Below are positions 13,030-25,555 of a stretch of 26,564 nt of DNA, piece by piece (position 1 is the stretch's first letter; each line of letters opens with the position of its first letter). The stretch lies in the IMG/VR virus record IMGVR_UViG_3300005859_000008, positions 1 through 26,564 of that record; one strand, written 5' to 3'. The notes beneath the pieces were generated by a model, which was given only the letters and a program-made list of their open reading frames with translations, was not told the DNA's origin and made no database searches. The position numbers and the translations under genes are program-made.

Positions 13030-13824
13030 AGTGTAACATATACATCTATATCGGAATTATTAGCCTCACCATTTCAAAGACTTACATCATCTATGTGGAA
13101 CACGGCAACACTTCTTCTAATACAACTTTACGAAACAGGAGGAAATGCTGTGACATCAATTCTAAAAAACGGAAACTTGACAATTCCAGGGTCAATAATT
13201 GCTAGTTCTGGAAATTTCTACGAAGAAATTTATGTAGATGGACAGCCAGTTCTTACAGAACAAGACCCAATATACATTGCTGGATTTATAGCTACAGCTA
13301 ATGAACAAATAAATCAAATTGTCTATTCAAATCAACAACTTTATTATGCAATTTTGAAACTTCCTGAAGAAATTTATAATATAATTTCACAAAATTTTGA
13401 TAATATTTCTAATTCAATTTATTCTGCAATTAATTCAATTTCTGAAAAAATAAGTTTTCCATTTGAAGATGCAATTTATTCTGTAATTTATGCTTTAACT
13501 TATTTCTATTTAGCTACAGTTAGTTTAGCTAAAACATTTAACAAACTTTCATTATATTTATCCCCTCCAACAATAGAAGGACTACAATTAGATATAGATA
13601 CAATACCTTCTCCACTTTATTCAGGCCCAACAATTGAAACTGTAAGAATAATCTTACAAAATTTAAGTAATCAAATAGTTTATATTGGAAATCAATTGTA
13701 TAATAATTTCCCAATTTTTCCTAATGACAGTATAGAATTACATGTTAATAATCCAAGTAATATTTACGCTTGGGCAACTGGAAAATGTAAAGTTTACGCT
13801 CTATTCGAAGTAGTACAGAGTTAG
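13027..13824 (+). CDS. Conserved rudiviral protein, SIRV ORF268/269-like, probably virion-associated (265 aa)
   Basis: Size and synteny with the methyltransferase; shares N- and C-terminal motifs with the ORF564-like protein. Confidence 0.85.
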   Translation: MSVTYTSISELLASPFQRLTSSMWNTATLLLIQLYETGGNAVTSILKNGNLTIPGSIIASSGNFYEEIYVDGQPVLTEQDPIYIAGFIATANEQINQIVYSNQQLYYAILKLPEEIYNIISQNFDNISNSIYSAINSISEKISFPFEDAIYSVIYALTYFYLATVSLAKTFNKLSLYLSPPTIEGLQLDIDTIPSPLYSGPTIETVRIILQNLSNQIVYIGNQLYNNFPIFPNDSIELHVNNPSNIYAWATGKCKVYALFEVVQS

Positions 13825-13832
13825 GTGATATT

Positions 13833-14375
13833 ATGCCTATAAATTTCAAAGATTATTTCTGTAAGTTAGAATGTTGTTATTGGCATGAATTTGAACAAGC
13901 TTATGGAAAATTAAATGTAAAAGATAGAACAGTTACGATAATTGGTAATGATTGTGGAAGTACAGTGTTATACTTTTTACTAAAAGGTGCTAAAAGAATT
14001 GTTGGATTTGAAAAAGAAGAAAAACTAAATCAGCTGTTCAAAGAAAAAGTTTGTAAAGACTTCAATATCTGTGACAAAGTTGAGATTCATGGGGAATGGA
14101 CTGGAAATCTATACCCAGACACTGACGTTCTAGTTATGGATTGTGAGGGTTGTGAGGCCAAGTTACTTGAAGTTAAGGCCGAACGAAGTGATGAACAAAG
14201 TTCATCACGAAGTGAGTCAAAACTTGATATTTCACAACTTCAAAAGTATAAACAGTATTGCATAGCCGTACATGATTGGACAGAAAATAGATTCGAATTA
14301 ATGAGAAAACTTTACGGAACAACTTTAACTTTTATAAGTGAAGATAATAGGGAATTTGTATTTTGTAAATTATGA
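13833..14375 (+). CDS. SAM-dependent FkbM-like methyltransferase, SIRV ORF158b-like, with a 20-aa insertion (180 aa)
   Basis: Motif I IIGNDCG, RIVGFE, VMDCEGCE (cf. FkbM KIDxEGxE); AGGTGA SD. Confidence 0.88.
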   Translation: MPINFKDYFCKLECCYWHEFEQAYGKLNVKDRTVTIIGNDCGSTVLYFLLKGAKRIVGFEKEEKLNQLFKEKVCKDFNICDKVEIHGEWTGNLYPDTDVLVMDCEGCEAKLLEVKAERSDEQSSSRSESKLDISQLQKYKQYCIAVHDWTENRFELMRKLYGTTLTFISEDNREFVFCKL

Positions 14376-16028
14376 AGAACAATAATTGTTTATAACTTTT
14401 GCATTTCCAGAAATATATATACCACCAGAATTCTTTTTACAAATTAAATTTTTAATTATTGCATAATCGTTAATTTTAATAATTCCAGAATTATTTTGAA
14501 TTTTTAATGTTATAATGTTTGAATTCCCATTTATATTAATAGTTCCAAGATTTTGATTAATTAATAAATTGTTTACATAAGAATTATTATTGATTTGAAT
14601 TGTTCCTAAATTATATTGTAAAATAAAAGAATTTACAGAACTAAAGTCTTGTAATTTTATAGTTCCATTATTAATATTCATTATAAGATTTGCAATTGTT
14701 CCATAAATAGTAATTGTTTGAAAATTATTATAAATTAGAAGATTTTTAACATAAACATTATTTTGAATTGGAATATCATCCATCAAATTTGCAATTAAGA
14801 CATTTAAAAATGTAGTTGTAGATTTTAATAAATTATTAAATTCATTACCATAACAACTTAACAAGAAATATTGATTATAATTAAAAGTTAAGAGTTGATT
14901 AACGTTATATACTATATTATCAAATTGTAAAGATTTTACGATTTCATTTGACTGGACATACGACATTCTTTTTTGTAATTGCATTATTGAAAAATTCGCT
15001 AATTCTATAATTGCATCAATTAGAGAATTGAAATAATCTGTAGTTAAAGGAAGTCCCTTTCTAGCTTTAATTAAAGGTGTAAATGCATATGGCTGAAAGT
15101 TTTCATAGAAATTATAGAAATCAAGAATTGCATTATATATATTTTGTGGGTATTGAAATTGAGACAAATAATTTATGTATTTATAAACACTGTATGCTAG
15201 ATAAAGGTCTTGTACAATTTCATTCCATAATTTTGATGAAATTAAAGAATATTTTTTTGGCGGAATTAATAATTTTGTAATTTGATAAAACGGTTTACAT
15301 AAAATAAATTTATAAGATATTTTACATTCATTTGGGAAAAGAATTGAATATGGCAAATGATTATTTTCTAAAAAATCTATAACTTGTTGATTTGCAAGAA
15401 ATTTTATATCTGTTGAAAAAAACGCACCGAAAAGGTGGCAATTACACGGTGTTATAAATTGTACAGACGTGTTATTCTGGATAAGAAATGCTTGACAAGT
15501 AGTAATTACTAAATAATTATTTAAATTGTCTAATGAAATAATTGAATAAATGGTATAATTACTACAACATGGTTGTGGTGTTGTAGATTGGATATTGTAA
15601 CCTTGACAAAACCCAGTTTTTTCTTGTTGATCATAATTACTTTGTATAGTCATATTTTGAACTGGGGAAATTGTAGTATTCTGAAAAGTCATAGTTAAAT
15701 TTGGAACAATTTGACAAGTTCCAACATTATAAAATTCAATTCCCTCAGGATAAATCAAAATTAACATATAATATCCTTGATAAAGTGATAAATCTACAAT
15801 AAAATTTTGTCCGACTTGAGCAAATCCAAATTCATCTGGATTTACACAAAAATAATGTCCATAACCAAAATTAAATGGATATTTTGAGAATAGAAATATA
15901 ACTAAAGAATTTACAGATAATGAAAATTGTAAAACATTAAAATTTACAGGATTCGATGTAAACATGGCTATTACTTCAAGAGATTGTACTGAAGGTAAAT
16001 TTAATTGTACACAATAATTTGAAGACAT
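14370..16028 (-). CDS. Probable virion/fibre-associated protein, SIRV ORF309/417-like, with C-terminal beta-solenoid (552 aa)
   Basis: Synteny downstream of the ORF564-like gene; GGTGA SD; five consecutive 20-aa-period NxGxIxI repeats at the C-terminus; Cys-rich. Confidence 0.8.
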   Translation of the reverse strand: MSSNYCVQLNLPSVQSLEVIAMFTSNPVNFNVLQFSLSVNSLVIFLFSKYPFNFGYGHYFCVNPDEFGFAQVGQNFIVDLSLYQGYYMLILIYPEGIEFYNVGTCQIVPNLTMTFQNTTISPVQNMTIQSNYDQQEKTGFCQGYNIQSTTPQPCCSNYTIYSIISLDNLNNYLVITTCQAFLIQNNTSVQFITPCNCHLFGAFFSTDIKFLANQQVIDFLENNHLPYSILFPNECKISYKFILCKPFYQITKLLIPPKKYSLISSKLWNEIVQDLYLAYSVYKYINYLSQFQYPQNIYNAILDFYNFYENFQPYAFTPLIKARKGLPLTTDYFNSLIDAIIELANFSIMQLQKRMSYVQSNEIVKSLQFDNIVYNVNQLLTFNYNQYFLLSCYGNEFNNLLKSTTTFLNVLIANLMDDIPIQNNVYVKNLLIYNNFQTITIYGTIANLIMNINNGTIKLQDFSSVNSFILQYNLGTIQINNNSYVNNLLINQNLGTININGNSNIITLKIQNNSGIIKINDYAIIKNLICKKNSGGIYISGNAKVINNYCSS

Positions 16029-17712: not shown

Positions 17713-17858
17713 TAAATACATTTTATAAATTGACAAAAATAAAGTGACATAACTTATATATCATATTATGTATATTACTTGTCATTACTATTCTTAACTT
17801 TTTACGTTAAATTAGAAACAACACAATATACCTTATATTATATATATGGCATATTGTT
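17710..17858 (-). repeat. Right arm of the 149-bp inverted repeat (promoter region of the ORF564-like gene)
   Basis: Mirror of 12881-13029 (paired coordinates sum to 30739). Confidence 0.85.
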
Positions 17859-24142: not shown

Positions 24143-25555
24143 ATGGGAAAGAGAAGAGGTAATAGAAATATAGCATCTATGAAATATCATCTATACAATA
24201 AAGTGTTAAATAGAAAAAATTTCCCAGCTTTTTCTGTAATGTTTAACGCTGGAGTTGAATCTGTTCTTCCAACTCCGTTAGAGAATATTCAAGTTCCTCC
24301 TGGAATAAATACTAATTATGGAATTGCTTACGCTACAATTATTTCATCTTTACTTTCTGCATTAAACAATCTAGCAATTTCTACGTTTAACAAAAATACA
24401 AATGTGCAAAGTTTTCTAAAATTAGGACAAAGTTCAATATTCTATTCAAATTTTGGACAGATGTCTGGAATTGATTTCGTTAATAAATTCACACAGCTTT
24501 ATGATGATTATGTAGACCTTTGTCATGTCTTATATCAGCCAGCTGTATTTGATGAGACATATTTTGACCTCTCTGTCTTCCAGCCAGCTTTTGCTATTGA
24601 AAATAGAAATGAGGCATGTAAAAAGATAGAAAAATATTTTGATAGTTTAACACATTCAAATGTTTCTATAGATTTAACGACACTTGGTTTTGGATATACT
24701 AATATTCCAAATGTAGACAATTACTCATTTTCAAATATTCAAAATACTGGAATTTCAGATTTGTTAAATGCACTTAATTTAAATTTTAATCAACTTCCAG
24801 ATTTAGCTAAATTTATAGTCTCATTTATTCCAAATCTAAACGACATAATAAATAGTGGATTTGCTTTAGACGTCGGATGGTTAGACAGATGTGTTTTAGC
24901 TCCAGAAATCAAAGAAACTTCAAGTTACAAAGTACAACTTAGAAACGGCATGATTTTGCAAAACTTTGCTAATGTTTTCGGTATGGTTTTAGATTATGTT
25001 CCTCTTGACTTAGCAATTTTAATTCCAGAATTTAATCCAAATGATGTAACTCTTGACAATTTAATTTCTATATTAACAGCTGATAAAACTGTTATTTCTA
25101 TTTTCGGAAACCTATTCAAACTACATTTATATGACCCATCTCCTGGCGGAGTAAACATAACTTACAGTTCAGAAATTGAAAATTATGCTGTTTCATACCA
25201 ACAATATCTTCAAATACAAAAAGTTGTAAATAGAAAATATTCAAACGTTTGGTATGCTAAAATGATAGCCTCAGCAATTTTAGAAATTGCCAGATATCCG
25301 TATCAACAAAACTACAGTTATTCGACTGGAAAAAGGACACTTCCATATTCTGAGTTTTTGAATTATTGGAAAACAAAATGGAAATTCTACGGAGTTACAG
25401 ATGAAGATTTACAATTTGCTCAACAATATGGTGAGAAAATACAAGGACAAGCCAAAATAGAAAATTCCTTAAAATTAGCTCAAAAAAGTGCAAAAGCTAA
25501 AGAATATAAGCCAATCTTTTACTACAAAAACTTTAAAAATATAGCTCAGAGATAG
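24143..25555 (+). CDS. Minor structural protein, SIRV ORF486/488-like (470 aa)
   Basis: Basic N-terminus; repeated FD...D motifs; divergent from the GNAT gene as in SIRV. Confidence 0.88.
   Translation: MGKRRGNRNIASMKYHLYNKVLNRKNFPAFSVMFNAGVESVLPTPLENIQVPPGINTNYGIAYATIISSLLSALNNLAISTFNKNTNVQSFLKLGQSSIFYSNFGQMSGIDFVNKFTQLYDDYVDLCHVLYQPAVFDETYFDLSVFQPAFAIENRNEACKKIEKYFDSLTHSNVSIDLTTLGFGYTNIPNVDNYSFSNIQNTGISDLLNALNLNFNQLPDLAKFIVSFIPNLNDIINSGFALDVGWLDRCVLAPEIKETSSYKVQLRNGMILQNFANVFGMVLDYVPLDLAILIPEFNPNDVTLDNLISILTADKTVISIFGNLFKLHLYDPSPGGVNITYSSEIENYAVSYQQYLQIQKVVNRKYSNVWYAKMIASAILEIARYPYQQNYSYSTGKRTLPYSEFLNYWKTKWKFYGVTDEDLQFAQQYGEKIQGQAKIENSLKLAQKSAKAKEYKPIFYYKNFKNIAQR

Follow-up and report, generated by a model that had tools for sequence, protein, structure and literature searches.

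A nested 60-base insert in a rudiviral methyltransferase gene is built from two hairpin-forming mini-repeats that recur elsewhere in related genomes

Related indels and palindromic elements

Indels of 12 bp are a recognised signature of rudiviruses and lipothrixviruses, reported by Peng et al. (2004, Mol Microbiol 54:366) and Vestergaard et al. (2008, J Bacteriol 190:6837) and summarised in PMC4390879, and we know of no accepted mechanism for them. These indels have lengths of 12 bp or multiples of it, lie mostly within ORFs and are presence/absence polymorphisms among close relatives. Three further systems offer points of comparison. Rickettsia palindromic elements (RPEs) are MITE-like, multi-copy repeats of about 100-150 bp that are found between genes and also in frame within bacterial protein-coding genes, where they encode hydrophilic peptide segments that the host protein apparently tolerates (PMC10969869). 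REP/BIME-type palindromes and IS200/IS605-type hairpin ends, which are mobilised or recognised by HUH-family enzymes, are dispersed short hairpins whose structure is kept whilst their sequence varies, but they are mostly extragenic and are not length-quantised. Templated (quasi-palindrome) mutation by intra-strand template switching is a mutational mechanism rather than an element family, and accounts for clustered, apparently compensatory changes that perfect a palindrome.

Here, we have examined a 60-bp insert in the 26,564-nucleotide IMG/VR virus record IMGVR_UViG_3300005859_000008 (hereafter the window, meaning this whole stretch of DNA), an uncultured rudivirus about 73-77% identical in DNA to the Yellowstone SIRV isolates. 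A preliminary description made from the sequence alone had reported nested 60-bp and 24-bp repeats around a hairpin within the methyltransferase gene, the removal of one unit restoring DCEGCESKLD and a 160-aa protein, and that observation proved correct in every detail. Its interpretation, that these are stacked micro-mobile elements or a spliced mRNA intron and possibly a switch on enzyme activity, was only partly supported: the nested architecture, the link to the rudiviral 12-bp indels and the idea of stacked elements gained support, the intron did not, and the switch stays a suggestion inferred from position alone. That description also related the 12-bp indels to archaeal intron cores, a link which has reportedly been proposed. 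The features are collected in Table 1.

Table 1. Coordinates of the host gene, the insert and its component modules and repeats in the window
Feature	Coordinates	Strand	Description
Host gene	13833..14375	+	Rudiviral SAM-dependent methyltransferase (SIRV1 ORF158b family; assignment from predicted fold and annotation of relatives), 180 aa here against 158-160 aa in most relatives
60-bp insert	14154..14213	+	20 codons in codon register, encoding EAKLLEVKAERSDEQSSSRS; boundary ambiguous by 5 nt because of the GTGAG repeats
36-bp core	14154..14189	+	EAKLLEVKAERS; exists on its own as the +36 allele; forms a small hairpin (GGCC 14156-14159 with GGCC 14177-14180)
24-bp element	14185..14208	+	Dispersed-copy register, GAA plus a 21-bp palindrome (9-bp arm, AAA loop, 9-bp arm); in codon register 14190-14213 (DEQSSSRS)
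5' arm of stem	14188..14196	+	GTGATGAAC
Loop	14197..14199	+	AAA
3' arm of stem	14200..14208	+	GTTCATCAC
Direct repeat, first copy	14183..14191	+	ACGAAGTGA, 9 bp; 11-13 bp long in other alleles (GAACGAAGTGA)
Direct repeat, second copy	14207..14215	+	ACGAAGTGA, 24 bp downstream of the first
Left microhomology	14152..14156	+	GTGAG, bounding the 60-bp insert
Right microhomology	14212..14216	+	GTGAG, 60 bp from the left copy

A natural allelic series within the methyltransferase gene

A tblastn search of the phage collection returned 57 rudi/lipothrixviral relatives of the host gene, all spanning about 158-160 aa and annotated as SAM-dependent methyltransferase. Protein and DNA alignments place a single gap of exactly 20 aa (60 bp) straight after the invariant DCEGC motif, and the nearest insert-less relative (L009; relatives and contigs are referred to here by such L numbers) reads DCEGCESKLD. 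The insert has a GC content of 0.43, compared with 0.30 for the rest of the gene and 0.265 for the window, and a third copy of GTGAG sits at 14143. Taken alone the hairpin is not remarkable, since the window has one perfect 9-bp stem with a 3-6 nt loop whereas shuffled sequences have 2.7 on average, although the single-strand DNA fold of 14150-14220 has z = -3.6. It is the comparison with other sequences that makes the feature significant. The same 60-bp allele also occurs in an independent assembly (L059), so it is not an assembly artefact.

A search of a large protein collection returned 97 rudiviral clusters whose lengths fall into steps of 4 aa. At this site only three states occur: empty, in most clusters; +12 aa (EAKLLE[V/I]KAERS; 36 bp), in 8 clusters; and +20 aa, being the same 12 aa followed by a variable 8 aa, in 3 clusters plus two further contigs. 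At the DNA level the +60 form is the +36 form plus a 24-bp unit lying between the ACGAAGTGA repeats, which confirms the nesting. Near-identical backgrounds differ by a clean gap: L061 (+36) and L062/L063 (empty) show 6 mismatches in 477 bp, L045 (+60) and L047 (+36) differ locally only by the 24 bp, and L008 (+60) matches SIRV9 (empty) around the site. L064 and L065 are identical for 310 nt upstream of the gap and differ at 30 positions downstream, so a recombination junction lies at the indel. Empty, +60 (two kinds) and second-site alleles (see below) all occur in the same sample, 3300005859.

The insert is either younger than the alleles that carry it or constrained. Among ten distinct carriers the 36-bp core differs by 4.5% on average compared with 15-17% for the flanking gene, and at third codon positions the figures are 8.9% and about 30%. 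On a gene tree built with the insert columns removed, the +36 state needs 5 changes and the +60 state 3, which is no more clustered than shuffled labels, and well-supported branches alone force at least 2 changes for each state. Homologous recombination plus repeated precise deletion could by itself give this scattered distribution.

We considered whether the 60 nt (or 24 nt) might be removed from the mRNA by the archaeal splicing endonuclease, given that removing the 60 nt restores a consensus protein. A scan for a bulge-helix-bulge motif whose cuts would remove 24, 36, 48 or 60 nt found no strict hit in the region, although about 1.35 are expected by chance. The best relaxed candidate (14158/14218), with a 4-bp central helix plus a 3-bp inner helix, lacks the outer helix, scores at chance level and its pairing is not kept in L008 or L045. 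The hairpin itself has no bulges, an Rfam search of the region gave only a chance-level hit (E = 0.19), and the core shows a conservative V/I replacement and synonymous changes, as expected for translated sequence. The variation is plainly at the DNA level, with empty, +36 and +60 alleles in genomes, and an RNA-level intron is not supported and seems most unlikely.

In the protein, the insert is predicted to sit beside the presumed active-site loop. The AF2 model (pLDDT 72.9) has a Rossmann-type fold with a strand order consistent with class I SAM-dependent methyltransferases, including the glycine-rich motif I and the acidic residue at the end of beta-2 (IIGNDCGS and (G)[FY]EKE are conserved), and Foldseek returned 490 PDB hits at E <= 0.001 with methyltransferases such as METTL5 and HemK at the top. 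There was, however, no Pfam hit above threshold and no PDB sequence hit, and so the assignment rests on the predicted fold and on the annotation of relatives. Residues 109-125 have pLDDT below 50 and form a loop directly after beta-4 (residues 99-104), which the catalytic motif IV follows in class I methyltransferases. This position, and the fact that the insert is kept in frame in many alleles, may suggest an adaptive change retained by selection with mobility incidental, either by modifying substrate access or regulation of the enzyme or by breaking a protospacer so that host CRISPR no longer matches; a review links genome changes seen on passage of SIRV1, 12-bp indels included, to hosts carrying matching spacers (PMC4390879). 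Against this, most alleles lack the insert and the states coexist in one sample, the inserted peptide is predicted to be disordered, and the same elements occur in non-coding DNA, as described below. We regard such an adaptive change kept by selection as unlikely.

Dispersed relatives of the two modules

The four +60 alleles carry four different sequences at the same place and all form hairpins, with inner stems and loops of TGAAC-AAA-GTTCA in the window, where two further changes extend the stem from 5 to 9 bp, and ACCGC-AAA-GCGGT, ACCGC-GTA-GCGGT and ATCGC-GTA-GCGAT in the others. The window's 19-23-nt palindrome occurs exactly at unrelated places: the C-terminus of a glycosyltransferase in SIRV4/5/11, where it supplies the last residues (DEQSSS) and runs into the stop codon, a gene of SIRV10, and intergenic DNA of contig L072. 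In L072 it is an exact 24-bp insertion, L076, SIRV4 and SIRV8 having the empty site, and the SIRV10 copy is a 24-bp indel against the window's own orthologue. L076 has another exact, intergenic 24-bp insertion in the opposite orientation. A second site in the methyltransferase itself, between GEWxGxx and YP, carries 24-bp variants in four clusters (L051 and L053 being examples), two of which differ by two double-sided, stem-preserving changes that alter the peptide (VEQSSP to VKQSLP). The same imperfect variant, with a T.C mismatch, lies in the N-terminus of another gene (L090/L092), and a further variant lies in L091. Overall, the unit is a precise 24-bp indel at two intergenic sites, the second methyltransferase site and one other gene, and it also occurs in two further genes.

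In the register that fits all copies, the element is RAA plus a 21-bp palindrome (9+3+9). In 486 kb of rudiviral DNA, 9 of 13 contexts with a perfect 5-bp stem closed by C-G around AAA/GTA/GAA share the prefix AAGTG[A/T]. Amongst alleles at the first methyltransferase site 4 of 9 stem pairs change on both sides and 83% of cells are paired, and amongst the dispersed copies 5 of 9 pairs change on both sides and 97% of cells are paired, compared with only 8-44% when the partner is slid by 1-3 columns. The intergenic copies, and the amino-acid cost of keeping the stem, show that the constraint or the generating process acts on the nucleic acid and not on the peptide, though pairing-preserving changes could come from template switching within quasi-palindromes rather than from selection. 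Short flanking repeats are present, namely GTGAR, the 9-13 bp repeats at the first methyltransferase site, GCAC and ACATT at full-length copies of the longer repeat described below, and RAA on both sides of some 24-bp copies, but their length is not consistent. A fixed 3-bp RAA target duplication fits some copies but not L072 and so is not claimed here. As MITEs are defined by a fixed target duplication and a mobilising enzyme, we do not class the element as a MITE.

The 36-bp core is related to hairpin 1 of a larger repeat. Larger 12n insertions found amongst the other indels resemble each other and the core, and define a ~120-nt repeat with conserved ends and two hairpins, for which RNAalifold gives 38 pairs, 11 of them compensated. 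The repeat folds better on one strand (-24.2 against -16.1 kcal/mol). An nhmmer profile search gave 49 hits in the DNA examined, with up to five copies around the methyltransferase gene in L012 and L053, and the repeat commonly lies immediately after the stop codon of that gene. Copy lengths are about 121, 109, 157, 96 and 72 nt, and so differ by multiples of 12 although the copies are non-coding. One full copy is a 120-nt insertion against three empty sites, whilst the window itself has no full-length copy. Rfam has no such family and the paper describing SIRV4-11 does not mention it.

In SIRV11, L072 and L076 the genome-wide best local match to the core is hairpin 1 of this repeat; in SIRV11 the score is 35 against a shuffle maximum of 24 +/- 2, in an alignment needing 12 nt of gaps which remove the T-tract. 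Using only the 36 inserted bases, all ten hairpin-1 modules score above the 98.7th percentile of random genomic segments (empirical p 0.0005-0.0125). A covariance model of the repeat, run over the whole window without filters, puts its best hit at 14150-14214, with both hairpin tops deleted in the alignment so that hairpin 1 matches the core and the base of hairpin 2 matches the palindrome. This support is marginal (E about 0.03), one of three empty control alleles (L009) scored 17.5 bits over the same region, and the link between the 24-bp palindrome and hairpin 2 rests only on position and the GTG...CAC ends. We therefore consider the relationship of the core to hairpin 1 to be supported, whereas the notion that the whole 60 bp is one miniature copy is only suggestive. 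A scan of cellular genomes with the core motif, which did not properly cover host genomes or CRISPR spacers, returned only a chance hit in a Clostridia MAG. A bacterial aroB contig (L056, 50% GC) shares 24 nt exactly with the core, but we judged this to be a chance match rather than its source.

These data bear on a simpler alternative, in which the extra 20 residues arose by local duplication or slippage within the gene and spread only by descent and homologous recombination, the look-alikes elsewhere being coincidences of AT-rich sequence and codon usage. In its favour, a 9-bp hairpin is not beyond chance in this window, the insert starts with EAKL, which resembles the native E[AS]KL, there is a 12-nt periodicity (AERS/DEQS/SSRS), MAFFT offers a register shifted by 12 nt, and rudiviruses recombine (PMC5454432). 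However, the identical palindromes at unrelated coding and intergenic loci, in several cases as exact 24-bp indels, the shared AAGTG[A/T] prefix, the occurrence of the same imperfect variant at two different loci, the similarity of the core to an independent repeat family and the lack of a 48-bp intermediate allele all count against it. This ordinary loop expansion is largely refuted by the dispersed copies and we consider it very unlikely. A two-step 12+12 origin of the nested unit is attractive, in that the 12 nt made of the loop plus the 3' arm in the window is an exact inverted copy of the preceding 9 nt plus a loop, but no 48-bp intermediate allele exists among the 97 clusters. Templated mutation would explain such a block and the lengthened stem, but does not on its own explain identical copies at unrelated loci.

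Length quantisation, origin and significance

Comparing the window with SIRV4, SIRV8 and SIRV11, all 30 cleanly flanked indels are multiples of 3 and 27 are multiples of 12 (12, 36, 60, 72, 96, 108 and 120), including intergenic ones of 72, 96, 108 and 120 bp. The insert thus belongs to the rudiviral 12-bp indel class with respect to its length, its presence/absence polymorphism in near-identical backgrounds and the genome-wide excess of 12n indels inside and outside ORFs. What differs here from the indels as summarised in PMC4390879 is that the inserted DNA is resolved into defined, structured, multi-copy sequences. Compared with RPEs, the insert works in a similar manner but is far smaller (a 24-bp unit and a 36-bp core), lies in an archaeal virus and is quantised in 12 bp, and no autonomous partner element is known. 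Like the REP/BIME and IS200/IS605 hairpins, the copies are dispersed and keep their structure whilst their sequence varies, and the ~120-nt repeat shows a strand preference in folding.

Taken together, we are fairly confident that the 60 bp is a DNA-level insertion made of two stacked hairpin-forming mini-repeats, the core being a miniature relative of hairpin 1 and the 24-bp unit being nested at its 3' end. Our analysis establishes directly the 0/36/60 allelic series, the dispersal of both families, the pairing-preserving changes in the stems, the 12n rule, the scattered distribution of insert states and the low divergence of the insert. The mechanism, by contrast, is inferred, and no transposition event, enzyme or unambiguous target-site duplication has been shown. 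In this view, the apparently mobile elements would arise and move through single-stranded hairpin intermediates, by template switching or an unidentified structure-specific enzyme (the rudiviral Rep and Holliday junction resolvase are only suggestions), during the strand-displacement replication described for SIRV2 (PMC5062984). They would spread between co-infecting genomes by homologous recombination at the highly conserved flanks and be lost by slippage between the short flanking repeats (GTGAR; GAACGAAGTGA). Translation of the insert, as a hydrophilic, disordered loop tolerated in the way that RPEs are tolerated in genes, is likewise inferred, and an effect on enzyme activity is no more than a possibility.

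A more far-reaching possibility, which we hold to be unlikely on present evidence, is that the 12-bp indels, unexplained since 2004, are largely the footprints of a family of hairpin mini-elements. The 24-bp unit, with two 12-nt halves each made of a 3-nt A-rich piece and a 9-nt arm, would then be one of the smallest mobile DNAs known, moving and resizing in 12-nt quanta through single-stranded hairpin intermediates handled by a viral structure-specific enzyme. The quantum may be tied to the 12 bp of DNA bound per capsid-protein dimer in these virions; PMC5517147 reports 12 bp of DNA per capsid-protein repeat in SIRV2 and AFV1 virions, which we mention only as a possible ruler.

This locus provides a complete natural series (empty, +36 and +60) and gives a concrete sequence identity to some of the long-unexplained 12-bp indels. 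It shows that the inserted DNA is not arbitrary, but consists of defined hairpin modules that recur elsewhere, keep their pairing whilst their sequence changes, and vary in length by 12 even in non-coding copies. A descriptive oddity is thereby turned into testable hypotheses about hairpin-mediated insertion, a structure-specific enzyme and a 12-nt ruler. The findings also provide an archaeal-virus counterpart to the in-frame palindromic elements of Rickettsia, and flag a previously unannotated ~120-nt structured repeat in Yellowstone-type rudiviruses.

The ~120-nt repeat and related insertions

A ~120-nt two-hairpin repeat, with ends that read TGAGGTCAAAT...ATTAAGCACAT, is abundant in Yellowstone-type rudiviruses, and up to five copies are present around the methyltransferase gene. 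The repeat has no Rfam family and is not mentioned in the paper describing SIRV4-11, and the lengths of its copies differ by multiples of 12. Insertions related to this repeat are carried by SIRV4, SIRV8 and SIRV11 at three places where the window has the empty site.

Coordinates of the repeats, indels and matches considered here (L numbers denote the comparison sequences)
Sequence and position	Strand	Feature
L012:777-3612, L053:27-2134, L061:779-899, L066:18086-18204, L072:2724-2844	(-) for L066	~120-nt two-hairpin repeat
window 12211, 14379 and 18728		empty sites for 108-, 72- and 120-bp insertions in SIRV4, SIRV8 and SIRV11
window 13818-13829		12-bp insertion relative to SIRV11 and SIRV4
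window 14510-14569	within ORF 14370-16028, minus strand	60-bp indel against SIRV8
window 17771-17842		72-bp insertion relative to SIRV11, SIRV4 and SIRV8
window 24439-24450 and window ~7752		12-bp indels against SIRV8 and SIRV4
L064:1188-1700 against L065:952-1428		methyltransferase alleles with a shared upstream part
L056:1926-1949 (LAHU01052189.1)		24-nt exact match to the 36-bp core
L051:1779-1802, L053:1773-1796 (equivalent to the window between 14112 and 14113)		24-bp unit at the second methyltransferase site
L066:9406-9430 (SIRV11; the same in SIRV4 and SIRV5)		palindrome copy at the glycosyltransferase C-terminus

Other indels in the window

The further 12-bp indels against SIRV8 and SIRV4 are heterogeneous in content and not palindromic, so not all 12n indels belong to the two repeat families, and the content of the 72-bp insertion at window 17771-17842 does not resemble either family. 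The 60-bp indel against SIRV8 lies inside the convergent 552-aa gene, whose C-terminal part is made of repeated ~20-aa units, and is probably repeat-number variation. The 12-bp insertion ahead of the methyltransferase separates its start from the upstream ORF, and contains the stop codon of that ORF together with a GGTGA ribosome-binding-like motif.

The methyltransferase insertion sites and the palindrome

The two methyltransferase alleles from L064 and L065 are identical for 310 nt up to the indel and then differ at 30 positions, so a recombination breakpoint coincides with the insertion site. An exact match to 24 nt of the 36-bp core was also seen at the start of a gene encoding 3-dehydroquinate synthase on L056, a bacterial-type contig of ~50% GC, but we judged this to be chance. 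The same methyltransferase has a second insertion site, which carries a palindromic unit (SVEQSSPQ or SVKQSLPQ) in four protein clusters, whilst the site is empty in the window. A copy of the same palindrome also encodes the last residues of the glycosyltransferase, which ends in ...DEQSSS followed by the stop codon, so the element appears to have reshaped a C-terminus.
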